Below are positions 50,818 to 64,000 of a DNA stretch of 64,000 nt, one piece after another. A program made the translations under genes and the position numbers. Source of the stretch: Klebsormidium nitens. Lineage: Eukaryota; Plantae; Klebsormidiophyceae. The stretch lies in NCBI GenBank assembly GCA_000708835.1, contig DF237391.1:12971-76970 (forward strand). The letters are read 5' to 3'. The first letter of the stretch is position 1; every line of letters begins with the position of its first letter. The notes under the pieces are model-generated. The model was not told the origin of the DNA. It saw only the letters and a program-made list of their open reading frames with translations, and searched no databases.

Positions 50818-53800
50818 CTACATGAACGGCGACGCCTTCATCAAACCAATCACTGCGATCACGTAGCCCACCTGCTGCAACCGCGTCAGCTGCCGGATGC
50901 CCTGCACGTGACGCAACACCCGCAGCATCTGCCACCGTCGTTTCAGCAGGTACCGACGGATCGGCTTGTTCTCCAAGCCCTCCGCTCTTCGCTGCTTCCG
51001 TCTCGGGCTCCGGGGGGGCAGATCGAGCCGCAACAGCTGCTTCTGCCGAGGGGAGCTAACCGCCAGCGCCCCTAGCGCCGACGCTTCGCTGCCCTTCTCG
51101 AGTGTGAGCTCGTCCCCGTCCGAGTCTTCGTCTTCGTCAAACAACCGCCGCAGGTTCAGGAAGCTCTCGCCGTCCGCACCCCCGGCGAAGAGCCCCTCGT
51201 CCTCCGCAGCCGAGAAGAGATCCACCCGGGAGCCGCGCCGGCTGAGAGACCGGATCTCGTTCGCCAGCTTCTCTGCGAGGGGCCCCATCGAGAGCGGCGT
51301 CTCGTCCTCGCCCTCCTCTGCGACCCGCTCTAGTTCCTTCTCCACCGACTGCTCCAGGCTGGCCATATCCGACACCTGCTCCCGCTCGCCACCCGACATC
51401 CCGTCGCTCGAGTTGCGCAGCACGCACCGTACGAGCTCCTCGAGCACTCCCCCCTCGCGCATCTGCTTGCACGCAAACAGGCCCGCAATGTACGTGTGCA
51501 TCATGTGCTCCTCCATCTGGTCCACCTTGCGCCCGAAAAGCATGCTCAGGTGCTGCGAGCCAAACTGTGCGACGAGTTCGCGGTCCCGGATCGGCTCGAG
51601 GGATCCCTCCTGCATATCGAGCATGACGACATGCCCCGCCGAGGTGTAACTAGACGCGTGCGGGGTTGGGTTGTAGACCACCGCACTGACCATGCTGGTT
51701 AGGAAGGCGACCAGGCGGCGGCGGACGGATTTGGGCACGGGGGACGCGGCGAGGCGCACAGTGACGCTCAGCGGGAGGCGCGTGAAGTGCTGGATGGCGC
51801 CCAGGGCGATGTCCATGAGGAAGCCGGCGTCGGCCACGGCGTCCATCTTGTTGAGGGCCTTGGAAACGGCGTTGATGACGGGCATGAGCCTGGAGGGAAG
51901 GGATTGGGGTCAGCATTTTCAAACCAGGCGCAAATTGCTGCTGCAGAACTATTGGTAGCGATGATGAGGGAAGGGAACTCTCCCCTTAATCTCTTCCAGA
52001 ACAAACTGCTGTCATATTTTTTGAAAGAAGAACTGTATCAAGTCAGCTCTGAAGCTCCTAAAATCCTGCTGCGTTCCTGATCTGAGCATGTGCAGAGAGG
52101 GGTTGGAAGCAGAGCTGCTATCAAGTACATGTGTTTGCAAACCATATTTGACATGAGGACTCCCCCTCCTGTGGAACCTCTGAAATCCTAGAACGCACAG
52201 AGCTGGAGTCAAAACAGAAGAAGCTCAGAGCATCTTGAAAACTGTCTAAACTAGCACTGTGAGCAGGGCTTCTTGACCATGCTAAGTGTGTTAGCTCAAA
52301 CAGATCACAACTTGAGCAAAACGAGGCAGCTGAGACCTCACCTTGGCACCGGGTCATTCCTGGACACAAAGTGATAGAAGTGCCCTCGGTATGCTGTGTT
52401 CAGGTACTCAGCGAGCTGCGGGTTTGCAAACATCGGCATCCCAAAGGTGAAGCACTGCAGCTGCTGCCTGTACTTGCTGTCTGGCCCGTGGCTCTCCAGC
52501 AGCCGCAGCATGAGCAGAGACGCAACTGCACCCCCCATGGAGTGGCCGGTGAAGACAAGGTCGTAACCGAGGTCCAGCAACCGTTGCAGGTGCTCCAGAG
52601 GGATGCCCTGCAAGAAGGGAGCAGCTGAACTGAATAATGGAGCCACAAACTGCTTTTCCTGAGTGAGTGGGGTCATCTGAGCACAAAATGAGGGAATCTG
52701 CCTGATCCATGACCAGAGGCAAGACCGTTGAGATTCATGTACAGAGTGTGTGCCTGCTGCTCTCCTGCATCTCTCTTGATCCGCAAGGAGTTGATCTACA
52801 TTGCGCCCTCACTGCAAGCATTTGAAGAAACCCAACCACACAGCCAAGTGCTGGTCACACCTTAACATCACCAGGCACTCTGGTGTCTTGCCATCTACAC
52901 AGTCTTCCATACCATAGCTGTGTCACTAGGAGCTTGAACAACCAATCGAGTATGGTATGCACTAAGGAGCTCAATGCTTGAGCTGCTATTGGTAAAGCTG
53001 ACAAAAATCTGCGCCTTTCCAACATTTGCGTTTTGCACTGCGAGGCAGATATCACAAGCTCTTTGGAACAGGTTTCTGCAGTTTGATAGATCAACAGCAG
53101 GAAATCCAACGTGAATTACTTGACGAACCCAAATGATAGGTAAGCTGTGAACATGACCATGTAAAGAATAGTGACTGGAAGAAGTTAACAAAGGGACTGT
53201 CAACGAACTGTGCACTCCTTGACTAAGCTTAGTTAAGCTCTGTTGTCCTCAATGTAGAATCTGGCCCAGAGTAAGAATGGAGCTAAAGCCAGGTTGTGTA
53301 ATGAGTTACGGTGTAAGAAAAAATCATTACAGAACCATTTGTCTGCTTGATCTTGTGGAGACTGAAACCAACTCACGCTTGCTTATCCCTTACCTCAAAT
53401 AATCATTGCAAAAGCTTGCTAACCAGAATCTAGTGACCGGATGACTCTCATCCTGACTTGATAGACCCCACCCAAAAACCTCGCAGTCAAGCATAGGGAT
53501 TCAGTGGACTGAGGGGAGTGTAGATGTGGACCCTAGCAACCTAGCAATCATCAAGGTAGGGTCAACCAAGGTGCATCATTAATGATGGTCAACAGAGACC
53601 CTAAACCAGAGGTAAGCGAAAAGATGCTCTCTCAGTACAGGCTGATCATTCTATCCTTGTCATTCAAATGTCCCCAATCATCCATGTAAGCTACAAGAAT
53701 CAGCGCTTTGATCCCGTCATACCTGTGCCCTCGCCCAAAACCCTCGGTGTGCCATTGCGCCATTCGCTTCCATTCCCTTTCCGCAGGCTCGACCTAGACA

Positions 53801-54154
53801 CTCTAAAGCCTGCTGCCTGATGCTAAAATCAGTCACAATGTCTCTCAGGGTCTTCGTACCCCTAAGCGACACAACAATGTGCCCATGGGTACTTCTCGCC
53901 AAAACCAGCCTCTGAACCGAACTCTGATACTCTCTTGGCAGAGGCAAGAACTCAAACTTGCCTACAGGTTGCTCATACAGACGGTTGAGCACGGCATCCC
54001 TGTTCTTAGCCTTTATCTGGTACACGGCCTTGCATAGGACGGCAGCGTCAGAGACCTTCTCCTTCCAAGTTGAGGAGGACGGTGGGGGCAGTCCTGGTGG
54101 AGGGAAAGGAGTAGGTTCCACCATTTCAGCCTCTCTGAAAGGAAGGACCGCCAT
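50818..54154 (-). CDS. Class-3 lipase (alpha/beta hydrolase) with long acidic/basic C-terminal extension; 3 exons
   Basis: VVSLRGT..D..TD, AHRGF, nucleophile elbow FTGHSMGG, FTFGMP, Asp motif RNDPVPR, His motif EHMMHTY. Junctions RAQ|GIP and PR|LMP are phase-consistent; stop TAG 50818-50820. Confidence 0.88.
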
Positions 54155-54737: not shown

Positions 54738-55642
54738 TCAAGCCGCTCCCTTCCCCCTCTTTCCACCCTGCTTCGACGTTTCAGCCCCTCCCTGAGGCCC
54801 ATGCGCAGCTTCCCGAGCCGCGCGCTCTGCAGCCATTCGCGTCTGGCGCTGCAACTCCGCCTTCTGGGCCCGTTTAGCATCCTTTGTCGCCCTCTCTCTT
54901 GCCTCCCGTTCGATTTGCTTTGCGGACTTCCACCTCTTCTCGTCCGCTTTGCCGGGGTCGTACTCGACCTTCTCACGTTTGTGCCCGAGGCCGTGCTCCA
55001 CGGCGGCTTGCAAAGGCAGAGTGTTGTCTTCGTTCCGAATTCCGCGGATCCTGCGCGCTAGGTCCAGGTCCTTCTTCTGAAGGGTCTTCCGCTTGCCGTG
55101 CGCCTGGCAGAAGATCGCGTCACCGAACAGCCCTACGACAAAGTCCTGACTTGCCTCCAACAGAGCGTCCAACGCCGACACCTGCCACCTGGAGAAAAGC
55201 TTGCCAACTCGGTTTAGCAAGTGCTATGATAAAGGGGGCACTACATTCATTCCGATATTCCCAAACCGACATTAGATGTTGCAACGTTTTTCCCCCGGGC
55301 TGCCACGCTGGAACAGTGGACCAATGAGAAAAGGGGACCTGCAACCTGCGGTACCCAGTGCTTTTACGGGCAAATTCTCTACGGTCCCAGTCCCCGTACG
55401 TACCGTCGTAAATCACCGGTCGCAAGCAGTCGCCGAGTCGGCAGACACTGCGTACTCTGATTCAGTCTGAACCTAGGCTGAAATTTATCGCGCGGTGCGT
55501 AACTCCGGGGATTTTCGGGCTCAGTAGTGAAAACTCCAAGTCTGACATGCGGCGATTCGAATTCACTCGAACGTGCAGAAAGATTCGCATATTGGCTTGC
55601 CTCTTCCCCCTGGGAAGTGGGCAACCATCGGTATGGGTTCAA
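54738..55642 (-). CDS. Histone H3-like histone-fold protein with ~100-aa basic/charged C-terminal extension; spliced, start uncertain
   Basis: Exon 55188-54738 reads WQVSALDALLEASQDFVVGLFGDAIFCQAHGKRKTLQKKDLDLARRIRG, aligning to H3 [48 protein letters not shown]. It has a strong acceptor ttttctccag. Upstream putative exons give APRDKFQPR|EFARKSTGYR|R with matching phase-2 junctions. Confidence 0.8.
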
Positions 55643-56249
55643 TCGGCGCTGTATGCGGGGCAGCGCGGGCCCCGGCGCTCGGCCTGCTTGCGTTGACCGG
55701 GTTCGACGATAAAACGTACAGTACGGTGTTAAAAAGTTCCCGTATAATGGCGACAGGGTCCGTCAGACTGGGCCGCGCGTCGCGGTGCGGATTGCGGTTT
55801 AGAATCGAACAATTTGGTGGAAGTTTCTGCTGCTCTGAGTCGTCGTCGAACTAGACCGCGCTTAGCTGGGCGGGGTATACCTAATACATTATCTACCCGG
55901 CCTACCCTGCGTAGGTTGACAATCTATCTGTGCTTTGACGCTAGTGATGAATCTGCGTTGCATGCATGTCGTGCATGCTACCTTATGGCGGTACGTACTT
56001 TGCGGGCGTGTGAGACTCCGTCTTATTATTAGCGGTAGGTACCTCGACGGTTCGTTTATTTCAATGATCGCTTGAAGCGCGGCTAAGACTTCTGTACGAC
56101 TTTCGACTGCTGTGCTGTTTCTATGTCGATGGAGTTCTGTTCGTGGCTTCTGTGCGAGTCCTGTCAACTATTTGTAGCTGCTTTTTCGGCGCCTTTCTTG
56201 CTTCACTTTGACCTGCTTAAACTTCTGCTGCGAAAGCGTGATCTCGTCA

Positions 56250-59200
56250 ATGGCGTCGCCTGCTGATGATGAAGATAGATATGGGTCGCAGGTATTGTTA
56301 GGCGACGAAGTCTGCGCAACCGCGCTTGATGGTCGCTTCGAAAGTTGCGCAGGTACAGTTATCAGCTGGGAAGGCAAAGAAGCAGGTTTTTCTATTCGAG
56401 TGGCAGTGCCGCCTTCTCAGGAGGGAGCTGTATTGAGCGGTGTACAGGCATGCGAGATGGCATATGTAGTGCTTGTAGAAAACTGTACAGATAATGAGTC
56501 GGGTGAAGCTGCGTGCTCTGAGGAGCAGAAATCTGGCAAGTTAGATATGATCCTGTGTCCTTGGAAGCTGCACTGTACGAACAAAGTCCTGCCAGATGCG
56601 CTTAGTTGTCAGGTCTGCGGGGGCAGCGGGAAAAAGCGTTTGAAAGAATGTCCAGTCTGCACGCAGAGAGCATTCAATCAAGCACACCTTTGTGGTAATT
56701 GCAAGTACAGATTTGCGGAGCATCCTGGGTGGTTTAGGGGTGTTAGCAAGACGAAGCGCTTGCAGCAGCCATTCGAAATCAAGTGTTCTTTTAGCAACAA
56801 GCAGTATCATTACGGTAAATTCGACTCTGAAGAGCAGGCTGCTAGAGCGTATGATTACGTAGTTGAAGCGCTCGTGGCGGAAGGCGCTTACCCGAGGCCT
56901 CTCAACTTTCCTGACGGGTTGGCTATGGATGCAGCGGAGCGGGCGTATGCTGAACAATGTTTGACATCAATTAGAGGTAAGATGATGCAACGCCGAAGAG
57001 CACCCAAAACTGATGAGTCTACTTCGTTTCCGAGCCGTACGCTTCCCTTTGTAGTGTACGATGAACAGGAAACTGGTCGTGCAAACTATCGCGCTCGACT
57101 CAAGGTGGGAACTTGTGTTTATCAGCTTGGTGAGTATGAAACTGAAACGGAAGCTGCTTTAGCGCACGATTTCGTCGCGAGACAAGCACCTGGAAGCCAC
57201 AAACTTAATTTCCCTGCTTCTGATCAGTTAAAGCTGTGTTCTGAGGTGGAGAAGCGTTTGGAAAGCGTTATCTCGACGATGATGCCGAACGCTGGTTGTT
57301 CGGCAAATGACATCGCCTCGGAGCCTCTTGAAGACATAATTCGCGAATTTCGTCAAGCAAGTGATGAAGGACCTGTATTTGTTTGCACTTGCTGCCGCCG
57401 TACTTGGTTTTCGCATAGTATGCGAATAGTTAGTGACACTTTGAGGAATCGACTTGAAACTGATGAAGAGCTTGCTTGGTTGACCGGTCGCAAATCTGTA
57501 AACGATGAAGAGTGGATATGTTCCACATGCTATCGGTATGTGGCCAAACGAAGATGTCCACCTGGTGCGCCGCCTCACCAACCAGATTTTGCGACTCTGG
57601 ATCCTGTGTTACAAGATTTGACGAGTATCGAGAATGATCTGATTGCTTTGCGACTGCCTTTTATGAAATTACGTGGTTTGCCGCCATCGACGGCAGGAGG
57701 CTCTTCTAAAGCAGGTCAACTAGCTTTGAAAGGGATGGTAGTCAACGTTCCTGCCGATTTAAATAAGATTCAACTCGCTCTTCCAAGACTTATTGATTCA
57801 GAAGGAACTATACCCGTAGCTATCAAATACAAGTTGAAAACTAAGGCTTGTTATCGAGCGGCGGAGAACGTGCGCCCAGCAAAAATACGTGATGCTTTAA
57901 TTTTCCTGACAAGACAGCCGACTCTTTGGCACAAGCCTACTCTTTGGTATGATGCGTCTGTATCGATACGTTCTGACTGGCTTAACGAATGCAGTAAGCC
58001 AGCGAAAGTGACTATCTGCGACTCTCTGCCATGTACGGCCTCGCTTGGTCTTGAAAGCGGTCCGTTCGTACACGAACCAGCACCTATTACTTCGTCGTCT
58101 GATTCGGAGCCTGAAGAAGATGAGGACGGTCAGCTGCCGCCGGAAGAGACTATGCTGCAAGACGCGCCTGCGTATGTTAGTGCTCATTTATTCGGTGTGA
58201 ATGTGGCACCAAGTGAAGGTCAGACCCCAATTGGTATGCTTCAAGATGTGTATGCCGAAGAGAAGGCGTTTCCTTGTCTATTCAACGGATATGCTAGGCC
58301 TAAGGGCAATCAAAGTTACAGCAAAGTATGTAAATTTGAACTCAGTAATGAAGATAGGCGATTTGCACGTCATCCAAGCAACATATTTTTCAAACTACGA
58401 AAACTACAAGCGAGTTTCGTGTCTGGAGAATCATGGGTACGGTTACGGAAAAAGAAATTGCCAAATAATATATGTCCTACTGCTGGAGAACTTCGAAATC
58501 CAGCCGTTCAAACTTCTCTGGTATCACAGAATGTAGGCTACCGGGACTTTAAAACGCTACGCGGTAGTCCGGAGTATAACAGGCAAGGAAAGAAAGAAGC
58601 TTTTGCGATGATACGACAGTTAGGCCCGTTCCAAATTTTTGCTACTTTTACTATGTCTGAAACTCGTTGGGGTGTTCTATTGCGAACTTTGCACAAATTG
58701 GCAACTGGAGAGTTCATTTCTGAGGCTGCCGCTTTACAGTTACCTTGGTTGGATAAAGCGCGACTAATCAGAGATGATCCTGTCACAGTAGCACGTTGTT
58801 ATTGTAATCGGAGAGATCACCTGATCCATACACTTCAAAAATACTCGACTTTGATTGGACACGTCACAGACTTCTTTTGGCGCGATGAATTTCAACAACG
58901 TGGCTCGCCGCATACGCATGCTGCTTTCTATCTGGCCGATTCTCCTAAATTTGGAATCGACGATGATACAGCGGTCGTTGCTTTCATTGACGAACACGTG
59001 ACGTGTTCGTCTTCGGCTGCATCTCCGAGTGATCTGGCTGGGCAGTACCACAAACATAGGCGTGGCTACTGTCTGAAACGTAGCACTTCTGGAGGCAAGT
59101 CTGTTTGTCGGTTTGATTTCCCCCGGCCACCTTTGCATGAGACAATGATTTTGAATCCGTTGCCGGAAAGTATTTCAGACTTTAAAAAGCAGGAATGCGC

Positions 59201-62200
59201 GGAGTTCTCGAGACGAATAACAACAGGCTTAAGGCGTCTGGAGTTGGACGAATCAAATCTGCATCGTTTGTCGTGTTCCGAGTTCTATGCTAGCTTGTCT
59301 TTGACACCCGCAGAATATGTACTTGGTCTGCGGTTCAGATTGATGAAACCAGCGGTGTTTTTGCGAAGATTACCTTCTGAAATTTACATCAATAACTATA
59401 ATCCGAAACTGTTGAAATTGCTGGGAGGTACGAATATGGATATACAGTTCGTCCTAGAAGCGTACGCTGCGGCCAACTATATCAGTTCGTATATGATGAA
59501 AACAGATTATCGGCTTAGTAAACTCTTAGATCAAGCGTATGCCGACGCTCGGCGAGGAAACATGGAACTTCGCCGAGGAATAAGGTATGTGGGCATGGCT
59601 CTTCTAAAAGGTCAGGAAATATCGGCGCAAGAAGCGGTGTACGGATGCCTGGGGCTTCCGTACAGGCATAGCTCTCGACAACACATATTCATTCCAACAA
59701 GCATTCCAGAAAATCGTACTTTATTGATCAAAACCGACAGTGCCCTGCGACTCCTTCCGGAAGACTCGACGGAATGTGTTTATTCCAACATAGTCGACAA
59801 GTACGCGATGCGTTTACAAAATTGGAGCATGCAAGGCTCTGAAAATTTAACTTTAGCAGACTTCGCTGCGTGGTTTGAAGCCTCTAAGAGCTCTCCAGAT
59901 CTTCCGGAAGAAGTAAATGATGACGCTCTAGATGACACAAGTGTGAGAAATCAAGAGCCGGCACTTGACTTTGACGACAGCCGTGACGTGTCTGGTTCTG
60001 TCAGATATCATAAGCGCGAAAAAGCGAAGATCATACGGTACGCGAACTTTAAAAAATCTGAGGATCCCGAACTATATTACCGCGAGCGTATTATGCTGTT
60101 TCTCCCGTGGGCATTTAGCGGAGACAGCTCAATGGCTCTGAGCGCAGCTGAAACCGATATACTACTGGCTGGCTATGACACTTTCGAAGCCCGCTATGAG
60201 GCTGAGAAAGACGCCATTGAAACTGCTGCAGCAGTCTACGATTATCACTCTAATATTGTCTGGGACGAGGTCGAAAGATACGCAGAAAACAAGGCAGCTG
60301 AAGACGCAGACATCTTCGGTGATACTTCAGAGGATCCGTTCATCCGTAATTCAAACGTGACCTCGGAAACAGGTGCGCCTGTCGAGTTCACAGTATCACC
60401 AGACTTCGTGCCGTCTGCAGCTTCGTCCGCTGTAGAGAAGCTACCCCATTCACAATTTGTACTGCCTGATGATGACTTCCGTGCACAAATGCGGTCGCTT
60501 ACGACAACGCAGCGATCGTACGTGGATCATGTCTTACATTCGTTAAAGTTCCCGGGTACTCGAAAATTTGTCGAATTTCTTACCGGTGGGGCTGGAACGG
60601 GTAAAAGTCTGGTTATTCGATGTATCACACAGCTGGTTATTAGAACGTTCAGCGGAGCTATGGGTTTGCAGCCAACTTCTTTGAAAATGTTGTTAGCCGC
60701 GTTCACGGGAAGTGCCGGCTTCAATATAGATGGTGTGACGATCCACTCCGCTTTTAAACTTCCGCTGTATGCGAAACTAGAATCTTACATTCCAGTCGCT
60801 GGTGAAAAAAAAGCGACTCTTAGAGACGCATACACAGATCTCAGAGGGTGCGTCATTGACGAAATCTCAATGACGGGTGCTAAATTGCTACAGATGATCA
60901 ACTATCGCTTGCAAGAAATATTCGAGTCTGTCGATCCGTTCGGCGGACTTCCGATACTCTTTGGCGGTGATTTGTTTCAGTTGCAACCGCTTTGGGACGG
61001 CTACGTCTTCGAGGGAGTTCGTAAAAACGGAGTACTGAGTTGTTAGCAATTTGTGGGAGGAGAACGTCGAAATGTTTGAACTCGTTCAAATCATGCGGCA
61101 GCAAGAAAACTTGGAATTTGCCGAAGCGCTTAACCGGCTGCGGACAGGCAGTCATACTGCAGCGGATTTAGCGTTGTTTGAAACGAGAGTCGTAGATCCG
61201 CTGAATCTGCCAACAAGTTATTCTGCTTTTGACAAGCATATTTTTGCCACTCGCAAAAAAAGGGACGCCCATAACAGTCTGGTTCTGCGCCTTACGGGGG
61301 GTTCCGAATGTGAAATTCATGCACGAGATGAGCCGTTATCATACGGTGCTTCAACAAAAGACCGCGAACACTTTCTGTTTAGAGCTGCGAGTATGCCGGA
61401 TACAGAAACGGCAACATTGTTTGCGGTTTTACAGCTAAAAGAAGGACTCTTGGTCGAAATTACTTGTAATACAAATAATCCGGACGGATTGTACAATGGA
61501 GCTACGGGATACATCCGGCGGTTCCACGATCTCGGTGGCCGCGATCCGCACGTTATTTGGGTAGAATTTTTAGAAAATAGAATTGGGCAACAAACTCGTG
61601 AACAATGGGCTTCTCTGTATCAGCAGTGCCCGTCTATTGACTCTGCGTGGACACCAGTATTCCGAATTTCTCGAACCTTTCAAGCCACTCGAAGAATTGA
61701 AAGTACAATTTTGAGAACCCAGTTTCCTTTGCGACCTGCAACCGCCGGAACCTTCTACCACACACAAGGTATGACTTTGCGGAAGGGCTCTCTCGATTTC
61801 AGGGGCGCCTCGAAGCATCACGTGGACGCAGGTCGTCACTACGTAGGTTTGAGCCGGTTTCCTGACTTGAATCAGCTATTCATACTAGATCCTGCTTTCG
61901 ATGAGATTATAGTAAGCTCTAAGGTACTTAAAGAAATGGCCCGTCTTCGGCAACAAGCGTGTGTGATCCCATGTATTCCACAAGTATCTATCAGTCCTGG
62001 GAGCGATCGAGAATTGCATTTACTTGCTCACAACGTGCGTTCTTTGCGTCTTCATGCTTCTGACATATTTTCAGATACTAATTTCCAACGCAGTCACATA
62101 ATTGTCTGTACAGAAACGCGGGCGTCGCCCATGTGGGACTTTTCCTCGCTGGAACAGCCTGATTTCGATTTATTCCGTGCAGAGGCTAATCCATCTGGGC

Positions 62201-62709
62201 GAGATGGTTTCGACAATGTTTTGGTGTACATATCGAAGAGCGGTCGAATGCTAAGCGGCACCGTTCATTCTGCCTTCTCTGATTGTCATTCATAGGTGTT
62301 GTGCGTGCATGTACGCGGCCGTCCTGATCCTGATTTCTATCTCATAGCAGTGTATAGATCACCATCTGACTTCCAAATCGACCGTTTTTTGGAAACCGTG
62401 CACTCGTTCATTGCTAACGTGATTCAAAGAGCGCCTACTTCTTCCCCCTCATTCGTATGTGCAGGAGACTTCAACATAGACCTCCTAAAACCTTCTGGTG
62501 CAGCTAGCCGACTTATGGACATTATGCGTTCTTTTAATGCTCAATTGTTGAACTCGTTGCCGACTACGAATCAGGGCGCTCTTCTCGATCACATCTGGGC
62601 ATCGTCATCTCTAGCAGGCGCAGGAACAACTAGAAACTTGGAGGCGTATTGGAGTGATCACTGCCCAGTGCACTCCACGTTTCGTTGGCACGAGTCTGAG
62701 TCCAGGTGA
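56250..62709 (+). pseudogene. Rep/Pif1-helicase/AP-endonuclease polyprotein with N-terminal Zn ribbon and two AP2 domains; frameshift near 61040-61050 and in-frame TAG at 62293-62295
   Basis: Zn CQVC..CPVC..CGNC; AP2 x2; CTCC...CSTC and DLTSIENDLIALRLPFM..LKGMVVNVP (Helitron N-terminal block); Rep FATFT, EFQQRGSPHTH, YISSYMMK; helicase GGAGTGKS, AFTGSAG..IDG.TIHS, IDEISM, GGDLFQL, IMRQ, QFPL, YVGLSR; EEP HNVRSL, CTET, YRSP, GDFN, LDHI, SDH. Confidence 0.9.
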
Positions 62710-63116
62710 GCAGCGAATATTCTGTCCATTTGTACTTTGAGATATTGGGCAACATAAAATTCGCAGATTCTGCAGATTGTGCGCTCGTGAAGCGGCGCAC
62801 GCGAAGAATGCACCCGCTAGGGAAAAGGAGCGCGTGTGAAAGGGAATGCGCGCGCGCGCACAAACAGGCGCACGCGGTTGGTCGTACTACAAGAACTCTC
62901 AGTTTGGCTTCTCTGCTGCGATTGTTCATCCGTTTCATATCTCCGGCGCGCACAGCCTGAAGCTGTGTCTGCGCAAACACTGATCTAGATCATGCACAGT
63001 TTCGGCTTCAAAGACGTCGCATGCACTTAGAACGCAAACACGACTTCAGCTGTATCTGCACGCAGCTTTCAACTTCTGTCATTTCGCGTCATCTTCTAGT
63101 ACCTTCTTCACATTCG

Positions 63117-63298
63117 CCACATCAGCGTCATTCGCAAACTTTCCATCCTTCTCCCACATCAGTGTCATTCGCGAACTTTCCATTCTTCTTCGGCTTCTCC
63201 AAAATTTGTTAGACTTATCTGCGCACTGTTTACAGCTCAGCAAACACGACTTCTTTGACTTATCTGTACATTGTTTACAGCTCAGCATGCACGACTTC
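63117..63298. repeat. Two pairs of direct repeats (37-bp and 45-bp periods) between the endonuclease and the OB-fold gene
   Basis: ccacatcag(c/t)gtcattcgc(a/g)aactttccat at 63117 and 63154; gacttatctg..ca.tgtttacagctcagca..cacgacttc at 63212 and 63257. Confidence 0.85.
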
Positions 63299-63520
63299 TG
63301 AATGACTATCGTGACATTCTTACGTTCTCGTCTATCTTATGCTTCGACTTCGCTCTGCTGTGGCATATCGATACAGGCTTCTGTGTGCCTATCAGCCGTC
63401 CTCAAACGGCTTGCAGTACTGCCTTCCTCGGTTTCAGCGATCCTTCTTCCAAATTCTTCTGTTCTGCTGCACAACGTACTTCTAGCAAAAGAGCGCCGGG
63501 ATTCCGTCCTTTCGGGAACA

Positions 63521-63838
63521 ATGGCGCTGAAAAAGCCAGATGTCCCAACAGTCTCAATCAAGCAGGTCGAAGAATTTCCAGTGGATGCGAGCTTCTTCCA
63601 AGTGCATGGCAAAGTAGTCGAGTTAGACAGCCCCACCGAGAGCAACAAGCCCACTGTGCGCGAGCTTCCGTACGGCCATTTCCACACAACGCAAGCTGTT
63701 TTGCAAGACAAGTCGGGCGCGAGAATGACGGTGGAAGCCGTCAGCAAAGACAAGAACTTCGTGGAGACTGTCAGCAAGCAATGCTCGAAGGGCAACACCA
63801 TCCTGCTGTACAGGCCGGTTGTGGCTTCGTGTAGGTAA
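63521..63838 (+). CDS. Putative OB-fold ssDNA-binding (RPA-like) protein, first exon
   Basis: MALKKPDVPTVSIKQV...FQVHGKVVEL...GHFHTTQAVLQDKSGARMTVEAV...GNTILLYRPVV follows an OB beta-barrel pattern. Strong donor ag|gtaagt at 63835 and acceptor tttcag at 63911. Confidence 0.55.
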   Translation: MALKKPDVPTVSIKQVEEFPVDASFFQVHGKVVELDSPTESNKPTVRELPYGHFHTTQAVLQDKSGARMTVEAVSKDKNFVETVSKQCSKGNTILLYRPVVASCR

Positions 63839-64000
63839 GTTTTCATGGTTTTCTGATCTCATTGTTTCTTGTCTGAATATTGTTTTCTGGTCTCATCGTT
63901 TCTCCTTTCAGCTGCCGTCGCTGCATACAAAACGCTGGCCCTCGAATCAAGTTGTTGAACTACACTTTTTGCACAGAAGTGTGACGGTTGGACAGGGTTT

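Follow-up and report, generated by a model that had tools for sequence, protein, structure and literature searches.

A pair of AP2 domains fused in frame to a Helentron-type rolling-circle transposase in Klebsormidium nitens

Organization of the locus

The window analysed here, a stretch of 64,000 nucleotides from the streptophyte alga Klebsormidium nitens, carries, at positions 56250-62709, a transposase gene that belongs to a rolling-circle transposon of the Helentron type. Its features are listed in Table 1. A single ORF of 1612 codons (56208-61046) encodes everything from a predicted N-terminal barrel through the PIF1 helicase as one protein, and it is within this ORF that two AP2 domains are situated. 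The initial annotation, made from the DNA sequence and its translations, had proposed an in-frame fusion of two such domains with a transposase of the Helitron superfamily. Both of the peptides on which that proposal was based were located, at ORF residues 175-237 (AP2 domain 1) and 281-338 (AP2 domain 2), and the single ORF bears out the fusion. With Pfam, DUF6570, Helitron_like_N and PIF1 were found downstream of the AP2 pair, and a Cys-rich, zinc-ribbon-like stretch lies upstream, the DZR match of the latter having an E value of only 0.006.

Table 1. Features of the Helentron transposase gene and the evidence for each (positions are those of the window)
Feature	Position	Strand	Evidence
Start codon and N-terminal small beta-barrel (tentatively Tudor/SH3-like)	56250-56480	+	Common to P0002, P0005, P0007 and P0176; Met-motif alignment, AlphaFold2, Foldseek
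Cys-rich zinc-ribbon-like insertion (CX5C and three CxxC)	56556-56702	+	Motif coordinates; Pfam DZR E 0.0062, below threshold
AP2 domain 1 (RGV, AARAYD and LNFP motifs)	56730-56918	+	Pfam AP2; domain HMM envelope, residues 175-237; AlphaFold2
Inter-domain linker with predicted long helix	56919-57047	+	AlphaFold2
AP2 domain 2 (YRARL strand, EAA-AHD helix, LNFP tail)	57048-57221	+	Domain HMM envelope, residues 281-338; VIA-align
Conserved Cys motif, then DUF6570	57381-57923	+	Pfam DUF6570 E 4.3e-10, residues 460-572
Rep (HUH) nuclease region, Helitron_like_N	58332-59501	+	Pfam Helitron_like_N E 1.3e-18
HUH motif of Rep	58905-58928	+	Motif search
Two-Tyr motif (Y-x3-Y) of Rep	59478-59501	+	Motif search
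PIF1-like helicase, N-terminal half	60498-61034	+	Pfam PIF1 E 1e-18
Walker A and Walker B of PIF1-like helicase	60585-60608; 60852-60872	+	Motif search
Frameshift breaking transposase ORF	61035-61038	+	Alignment with uninterrupted relative P0175
Helicase, C-terminal half	61039-62016	+	Continuous P0175 alignment, 44% identity
APE-type endonuclease, with in-frame TAG at 62293-62295	62017-62709	+	Pfam Exo_endo_phos_2 E 8.8e-9 on 62296-62706 piece

The element was classified as a Helentron because of its C-terminal APE endonuclease. The components by which Helentrons (HLE2) are recognized, i.e. an HUH Rep with its two Tyr, a PIF1-like SF1B helicase joined to that Rep and the C-terminal APE endonuclease, are all present and, as in other Helentrons, belong to one reading frame, in which DUF6570 precedes Rep. 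Identity of the Rep core to those of Helentrons annotated in marine animals (Holothuria, Oculina and oysters) is 34-37%. Pfam detected neither an OTU nor a C76 protease domain in this element. Unlike the known Helentrons, it has an N-terminus with a Tudor-like barrel and two AP2 domains.

This copy of the gene has been put out of action by a single frameshift and a single stop codon. The Rep, PIF1 and endonuclease regions are collinear with those of the uninterrupted relative P0175, to which they align continuously. The P0175 sequence aligns in frame +3 as far as 61034, its next residue aligns in frame +1 from 61039, and the in-frame stop codon falls within the endonuclease stretch that aligns with P0175. 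The ORF pieces on either side of the stops were searched separately. The catalytic motifs of Rep, helicase and endonuclease have been retained.

Helentron (HLE2) termini carry short subterminal inverted repeats and 3' palindromes, and insertion occurs between T and T. A k-mer search of the non-coding intervals 55221-56249 and 62710-63301 returned a few 7-9-mers, each present 3-5 times; no repeat in these intervals was conspicuous as a binding site, the window ending at 64000 and the 3' end of the element lying beyond it. Short repeats were observed in the intergenic DNA at 63034-63295, before the next ORF. That ORF (63302-63838, same strand) was examined as a possible RPA-like single-strand-binding gene, and gave no Pfam match and no PDB sequence match.

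Sequence evidence for the AP2 domains

A Pfam scan had been set beforehand as a test of the AP2 claim. The scan produced a match to AP2 (PF00847), with an E value of 2.7e-6 for the pair, though its score of 28.0 bits is below the gathering threshold of 33.3 bits. Domain 1 alone scored 23.1 bits (E 9.4e-5), and the score within the whole ORF was 17.5 bits. No AP2 domain was reported by Pfam for the Helentron relatives P0002, P0005 and P0007 (see below), which were scanned alongside this copy.

Further evidence was obtained from searches of proteins and structures. A phmmer search of 1.84 billion proteins gave 639 matches at E<=1e-3, of which the best are strong multi-AP2 proteins; the leading matches (E 3e-33 to 1e-10) are proteins whose own Pfam AP2 scores range from 87 to 251 bits. 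When a profile of four Helentron N-termini was compared with the PDB, WRI1 (8e-7), ERF096 (1e-4, aligned to AP2 domain 1) and AtERF1 (5e-3) were found, and nothing besides AP2/ERF chains. A homologue search with residues 115-345 of the 1612-residue protein, confined to a band of lengths, gave no match. The best score in a search of the ESM Atlas, 0.83, was under the useful level. Their sequences assign the AP2 domains to the eukaryotic PF00847 type.

All three signature motifs, i.e. the YRGV-type first strand, the AAxAYD helix and the LNFP tail, are present in domain 1. Domain 2 keeps the helix motif and the LNFP tail; the Gly of its first strand has been lost in this copy but is kept by all of the relatives. 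The three-strand-plus-helix fold, an AARAYD-type helix motif and the LNFP tail are shared with the plant AP2/ERF proteins AtERF1, ERF096, TEM1 and WRI1. The domains of the present element differ from these in residing in a transposase rather than a transcription factor, and in the replacement of most AtERF1 base-contact residues: in the PDB alignment, domain 1 has other residues at most of the canonical base-contacting Arg and Trp positions of AtERF1, so DNA binding is here assumed.

Predicted structure of the AP2 region

The AlphaFold2 model of the AP2 region (pLDDT 83) contains two beta-beta-beta-alpha units, each a three-stranded antiparallel sheet packed on one helix. In domain 1 the strands occupy model residues 15-17, 25-31 and 34-41 and the helix residues 44-60, at pLDDT 88-96; a further helix is predicted in the linker at residues 78-100. 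The reference structures were those of AtERF1 (1GCC), ERF096 (5WX9), TEM1 (7ET4) and the double-AP2 protein WRI1 (7WQ5). Foldseek matched the model to WRI1 with an E value of 2e-5 and to AtERF1 with a TM score of 0.73. With VIA-align, WRI1 aligned across both units (Z 8.6), and the top five matches were all AP2/ERF proteins. Domain 2 matched TEM1 with Z 8.3 (model residues 112-180) and AtERF1 with Z 7.8 (rmsd 2.1 over 58 residues, 29% identity).

The subthreshold Pfam score could be taken to mean that the region looks like AP2 by chance or through its composition and has an unrelated fold. That explanation deserves hardly any credence, as the significant sequence matches in the PDB, and the five structures that match best, all belong to AP2/ERF proteins. 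The phmmer search, the PDB profile and the AlphaFold2 fold all agree with the original assignment, and both domains truly have the AP2/ERF fold, with enough divergence to miss the Pfam threshold.

The tandem arrangement of two AP2 domains is shared with the AP2/ANT/WRI1 subfamily. WRI1 aligns over both domains, leaving 12 linker residues of this copy without a WRI1 counterpart; the linker here is longer than that of the subfamily and has no detectable homology to other linkers. Neither by alignment nor with a linker-only profile was the conserved subfamily linker found between the AP2 domains of this copy.

Conservation of the fusion among Helentrons

The AP2 pair precedes DUF6570 and Rep, with the barrel first, in four divergent relatives (P0002, P0005, P0007 and P0176) that are 36-53% identical to this copy. 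A more distant Helentron, P0177, has a single AP2 domain, which resembles domain 1. The fusion is, therefore, not a peculiarity of one decayed copy. It is nonetheless confined to few elements: among the 120 closest Rep cores, AP2 was found only in P0176 and P0177. No AP2 match was obtained for the other 117, whose named members are from marine animals; P0175, also among the closest, is N-terminally cut short.

A tree built from 408 AP2 domains groups the first domains in one clade (support 0.97) and the second domains in another (0.84). Identity to the relatives is 42-52% for AP2 domain 1 and 36-43% for AP2 domain 2. Linker identity among the Helentron relatives, at 25-35%, is below that of the AP2 domains (36-52%), and the region of the Cys motif and DUF6570 is 56-58% identical to those of P0005 and P0007. 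It is apparent that the AP2 signature residues are invariant across lineages while the linker drifts. In the alignment of relatives, the invariant columns fall mostly in the helix and core; the strand positions that face DNA in the AtERF1-DNA complex vary between lineages. On comparison of these sequences, the AP2 pair belongs integrally to the transposase of a small Helentron lineage and is conserved there.

These data bear on the suggestion, also made at the outset, that the AP2 domains are captured host transcription factor sequence. Helitron-type elements are known to capture fragments of host genes, and the nearest named AP2 relatives outside the Helentrons are ordinary algal and protist AP2 proteins (Cymbomonas, Tetraselmis and Picomonas), as would be expected if a piece of a host AP2/ERF gene had been picked up passively and played no part in transposition. 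That the pair lies in frame, at the same position of the transposase ORF, in five lineages only 36-53% identical argues against this, as do the separate clades of the two domains and the constancy of the signature residues beside a drifting linker. Passive capture is thus very unlikely. Capture from a host is plausible as an ancient origin only; a recent passive event does not agree with in-frame conservation in five lineages.

The possibility that both AP2 domains were acquired together from a host factor with two of them was also considered and is unsupported. The linker-only profile found nothing significant outside the Helentron set, and no correspondence of first and second domains with those of two-domain AP2 proteins was seen (6 of 15, p 0.52, in a small set).

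No match was found in a scan of bacterial and archaeal genome contigs, nor was any found in metagenome contigs with alignment A1. When P0177 was used to search the metagenome contigs, two Helentron pieces (L001 and L002) were recovered that end before the N-terminus and are uninformative on AP2.

N-terminal barrel and zinc-ribbon-like insertion

The barrel was modelled by AlphaFold2 with five strands at pLDDT 76. Its best Foldseek matches are the SH3-like domain of KIN17, the Tudor domains of SND1, PHF20 and PHF1, and PWWP (E 0.02-0.1, probability 1.0), and there was no Pfam match for it. The model thus points tentatively to a Tudor/SH3-like fold. An HMM of the N-terminal (barrel) region matches Helentron relatives only, and the four relatives with an AP2 pair open with the same Met motif as this copy. 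No sequence similarity was detected between the barrel and the Tudor domains of the multi-AP2 proteins P0003 and P0011.

The zinc-ribbon-like stretch is missing or gapped in P0002, P0005 and P0007; in the parts that do align, identity is only 18-20%. Judged from this alignment, it is an insertion found only in this copy among the relatives.

Possible roles of the AP2 pair

The initial annotation did not recognize AP2 as a standard Helitron module, a view with which two papers on these elements agree. The accessory parts listed in the papers on HELIANO (PMC11417382) and on DINE-1/Helentron elements (PMC4067079) are RPA, OTU and endonuclease only, and AP2 is mentioned in neither. A literature search found no publication on a Helentron, Helitron or RepHel with AP2. 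AP2 domains do occur in transposases and integrases (Babu et al. 2006, PMC1702500). HNH-AP2 homing endonucleases and the lambda and Tn916 integrases share with the present element an AP2-type DNA-binding domain on the DNA-cutting enzyme of a selfish element. Lambda Int and the arm-binding domain of a P4-like integrase gave weak VIA-align matches to the AP2 model (Z 2.5-2.9). The HNH-AP2 proteins and tyrosine recombinases differ in the partner of the AP2 domain, which here is a rolling-circle Rep-helicase-endonuclease, and no HNH or integrase domain was found anywhere in the ORF with Pfam.

The explanation that best accounts for the data overall, and a probable one, is that of a Helentron transposase with a genuine, integral AP2 pair, which would be its sequence-specific, double-stranded-DNA-binding module. 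Points against it are the subthreshold Pfam score, the absence of the conserved Gly from AP2 domain 2 of this copy and the broken state of the copy.

What such a module would bind is a matter for more caution. Our preference, held tentatively and by analogy, is that the sites bound by the AP2 pair lie at the ends of the element itself or near them; so bound, the pair would keep the Rep nuclease in place. In lambda integrase it is the AP2-like N-domain that binds the arm sites, and in cut-and-paste transposases N-terminal DNA-binding domains bind the terminal repeats. Since the DNA-facing strand positions differ between lineages, they would fit family-specific sites.

The next most likely reading, on balance an unlikely one, is that the AP2 pair and the Tudor-like barrel choose the insertion site by tethering the transposase to genomic sequence or chromatin, the element's own ends being left unbound. 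In HNH-AP2 homing endonucleases it is AP2 that gives target recognition, and chromodomains tether some retrotransposon integrases. The barrel comes shortly before the AP2 pair in the ORF and has been conserved along with it, and the evidence for AP2 identity applies equally to tethering. However, the Tudor assignment is weak, given the Foldseek E values and the lack of a Pfam match, and the variation between lineages at DNA-facing positions is more in keeping with family-specific ends than with a host target common to all.

AP2 domains are typical of transcription factors, and the short repeats at 63034-63295 lie ahead of the next ORF; both would suit a host gene that has domesticated the Helentron transposase as an AP2 regulator, or an AP2 pair that regulates only the element's own genes. 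We regard this as slightly less probable even than passive capture. The frameshift and stop codon in this copy and the retention of catalytic motifs in Rep, helicase and endonuclease speak against domestication; this pattern is that of a transposon family rather than of a single domesticated gene.

Significance of the fusion

The prevailing view of Helitron-like transposases is that they work chiefly on single-stranded ends, and little is understood of the way in which they find DNA. The fusion of a well-known reader of double-stranded DNA to a Helentron enzyme offers a direct experimental handle on this question, in that its binding motif can be compared with the element ends and with insertion sites. 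Rolling-circle transposons also join the mobile-element enzymes that carry AP2.

The AP2 domains fall under the Pfam threshold and are, therefore, missed by annotation pipelines, and where gene models of such elements are incomplete, they could be counted in error among the AP2 transcription factors of algal genomes. That the host is a streptophyte alga bears on the proposed exchange of AP2 domains between plant AP2/ERF regulators and mobile elements. A mobile-element origin of the plant AP2/ERF factors has long been proposed. The combination of barrel and AP2 pair might even mark a Helentron lineage whose rolling-circle transposase is directed by sequence or chromatin, and which, living in a streptophyte alga, may also have carried AP2 cassettes back and forth between host genes and mobile DNA. 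This is improbable at present; if true, the AP2-Helentrons would provide a eukaryotic step on the way from mobile elements to the plant AP2/ERF factors.

Structure and integrity of the transposase gene

The features identified in the window are listed in the table below. The 1612-codon ORF contains legible HUH and two-Tyr motifs as well as Walker A and B, and the Met at 56250 corresponds to the start position in relatives. P0175, an uninterrupted relative of 1714 aa with Rep, helicase and endonuclease, aligns in one frame to 61034, its next residue resumes in another frame from 61039, and the alignment crosses the TAG at 62293-62295 without a break. The sequence is therefore read as one Helentron-type Rep-helicase-endonuclease gene carrying two lesions, a frameshift (61035-61038) and the in-frame TAG. 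No others were found in this long gene, and neither lesion touches its front 1595 codons, in which the AP2 region lies. With two disabling lesions alone, a fairly young dead copy is suggested.

Features of the Helentron transposase gene and its surroundings (residues are those of the 1612-codon ORF)
Feature	Position	Strand	Identity to relatives	Basis or remark
ORFs with GHSMGG-type serine-lipase motif	52338-54154	-		Upstream of element
Histone-fold ORF	54738-55220	-		Pfam histone, E 3e-14
GCATGCA/GCATGCAC motif sites	55959-55979, 63019-63027, 63285-63293			
Main ORF, 1612 codons	56208-61046	+		ORF call
Predicted barrel	56250-56480	+		
Zinc-ribbon-like insertion, Cys-rich	56556-56702	+	18-20%, largely gaps	DZR, E 0.006; weak Pfam support
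AP2-1	56730-56918	+	42-52%	
Linker			25-35%	
AP2-2	57048-57221	+	36-43%	
AP2	Residues 175-224	+		Pfam, weak match
DUF6570	Residues 460-572	+	56-58%	Pfam
Helitron_like_N	Residues 709-904	+		Pfam
PIF1	Residues 1431-1596	+		Pfam
Remaining helicase and endonuclease start	ORF 61051-62295	+		3′ of main ORF
Exo_endo_phos_2	ORF 62296-62709	+		Pfam
36-nt repeat pair	63117-63189			Upstream of ORF 63302-63838
45-nt repeat pair	63206-63295			Upstream of ORF 63302-63838
Downstream ORF	63302-63838	+		Same strand as transposase, towards window end

Identity of the AP2 domains

The initial annotation placed two AP2 domains in frame between a zinc ribbon and the Helitron N-terminal block. A Pfam scan, one of the checks proposed for this claim, did give an AP2 match, but at 23.1 bits for the first domain and 28.0 bits for the pair it fell below the cut-off of 33.3. 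A search of 1.84 billion representative proteins with the pair as query (180 residues, 56700-57240) yielded 639 matches with E≤1e-3, of which 56 had E≤1e-10. The best matches outside transposons have 3-8 Pfam AP2 domains each (87-251 bits); among those at the top are an 'AP2/ERF domain-containing protein' of Cymbomonas, a 'rap2-7-like' protein of Tetraselmis and a Picomonas protein.

As a single query, the sequence matched WRI1 in the PDB at 1.2e-4, with an alignment across both domains, as well as ERF096 and AtERF1. A profile of four Helentron N-termini only retrieved WRI1 (8e-7), ERF096 (1e-4) and AtERF1 (about 5e-3), and no further PDB entry. The AlphaFold2 model of the pair (mean pLDDT 83) consists of two beta-beta-beta-alpha units with a long helix between them. 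The best Foldseek match was WRI1 (2e-5), with TEM1, ERF96 and AtERF1 next in rank, and the top five VIA-align neighbours were all AP2/ERF (WRI1, Z 8.6; TEM1, Z 8.3; AtERF1, Z 7.8, rmsd 2.1 over 58 residues). It is apparent from these searches and predicted structures, rather than from Pfam, that the AP2 identity of both domains is confirmed, at the coordinates given in the initial annotation. The first-strand Gly of AP2-2 is absent from this copy and kept in all relatives, and its loss may represent decay.

The zinc ribbon of the initial annotation corresponds to a Cys-rich, zinc-ribbon-like stretch ahead of the AP2 domains; it resembles DZR weakly and, among the aligned relatives, is an insertion found in this copy only.

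Distribution and history of the fusion

The fusion extends beyond this copy. Three library representatives, P0002 (378 aa), P0005 (827 aa, with DUF6570 and Helitron_like_N) and P0007 (488 aa), share with this copy the N-terminal barrel, the AP2 pair and the sequence that follows it, at 40-42% overall identity. With the Rep core (residues 440-1300) as query, 455 matches were obtained, the best 120 of which were examined for AP2. P0176 (1271 aa, 53% identical) carries the barrel and two AP2 domains, the first degenerate and the second clear, ahead of DUF6570 and Rep. P0175 begins at query residue 454 and is thus silent on the presence of AP2. P0177, a JGI metagenome protein of 1381 aa from a more distant Helentron, has a Rep core that is 38% identical. 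Its only AP2 is canonical, keeps the usual Trp, lies at the extreme N-terminus (residues 21-79) and is closer to domain 1 (29.0 versus 11.7 bits); the Cys motif seen in this copy, Rep and PIF1 come after it. AP2 on Helentrons is therefore not confined to the two-domain lineage. The Helentron AP2 profile matched none of the other 117 of the best 120 Rep cores, many of which bear OTU, C76 protease or endonuclease domains; those with names belong to marine animals, among them Holothuria, Ptychodera, Oculina and oysters. Metagenome contigs were also scanned, and no locus with AP2 turned up.

A tree was constructed from 408 AP2 domains over 58 columns; it is short, and resolution is weak outside the two clades considered here. 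The four first domains form one clade (support 0.97) and the four second domains another (0.84), and these are not sisters. Together with the regional identities in the table, the clades indicate that the two-AP2 front end is older than the split of these Helentron lineages and has been retained, and that it did not arise by recent passive capture.

Sequences flanking the gene

The G+C content is 0.46-0.49 over the element (56-64 kb), versus 0.52-0.61 in most of the remaining window. The 3′ end of the element lies beyond base 64000. Short tandem and dispersed repeats, including three copies of a 14-nt motif, occupy 63034-63298, just upstream of the downstream ORF, and may be promoter or protein-binding sites. 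Around the transposase gene, the non-coding DNA contains five occurrences of palindrome-like GCATGCA/GCATGCAC motifs. The downstream ORF had no Pfam match and no PDB sequence match, which leaves its RPA-like assignment unconfirmed. As the histone-fold ORF covers just positions 74-122 of the 122-position Pfam profile, it is identified from sequence as a C-terminal histone-fold piece adjoining the element. The lipase-motif ORFs look like an intron-containing host gene for a class-3 lipase.

Relation to known elements and possible function

According to Babu et al. 2006 (PMC1702500), lambdoid integrases and the transposases of various elements can contain an AP2 domain, so the principle of AP2 on mobile-element enzymes is already established. 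The extras described as recurrent in Helitron-like elements (HELIANO, PMC11417382), and likewise in a Helentron paper (PMC4067079), are RPA, OTU and endonuclease, without mention of AP2, in agreement with the view that AP2 is not a standard Helitron module. A literature search, whose scope excluded most subscription journals and Repbase reports, yielded nothing relevant on AP2 in Helentron, Helitron or RepHel proteins, or on Helentrons in Klebsormidium. This copy shares the Rep-helicase-endonuclease of Helentrons and differs in its additional AP2 pair; its interpretation as an AP2-bearing Helentron is supported.

The first ~80 residues are modelled as a five-strand barrel, conserved in P0002, P0005, P0007 and P0176. 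Its best structural neighbours, KIN17 SH3-like, Tudor and PWWP domains, are weak (Foldseek E 0.02-0.1), and the Tudor/SH3-like/PWWP assignment is tentative. The barrel may be a chromatin reader. The main alternative for the AP2 pair, which we consider less likely than binding at the element's own ends, is that with this barrel it tethers the transposase to a target site or chromatin.

The DNA of the element itself is the usual target of N-terminal DNA-binding domains in transposases and of the AP2-like N-domain in lambda integrase; the latter case is mentioned in PMC3537659. In the alignment with relatives, invariant AP2 columns lie mainly in the helix and core, and lineages differ at the strand positions whose AtERF1 counterparts face DNA, a pattern that fits family-specific sites. 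Sequence comparison shows that the tandem AP2 module is a conserved part of the transposase. From its fold, the pair would be expected to bind double-stranded DNA sequence-specifically, quite possibly at the element's own ends, the reading that we favour.
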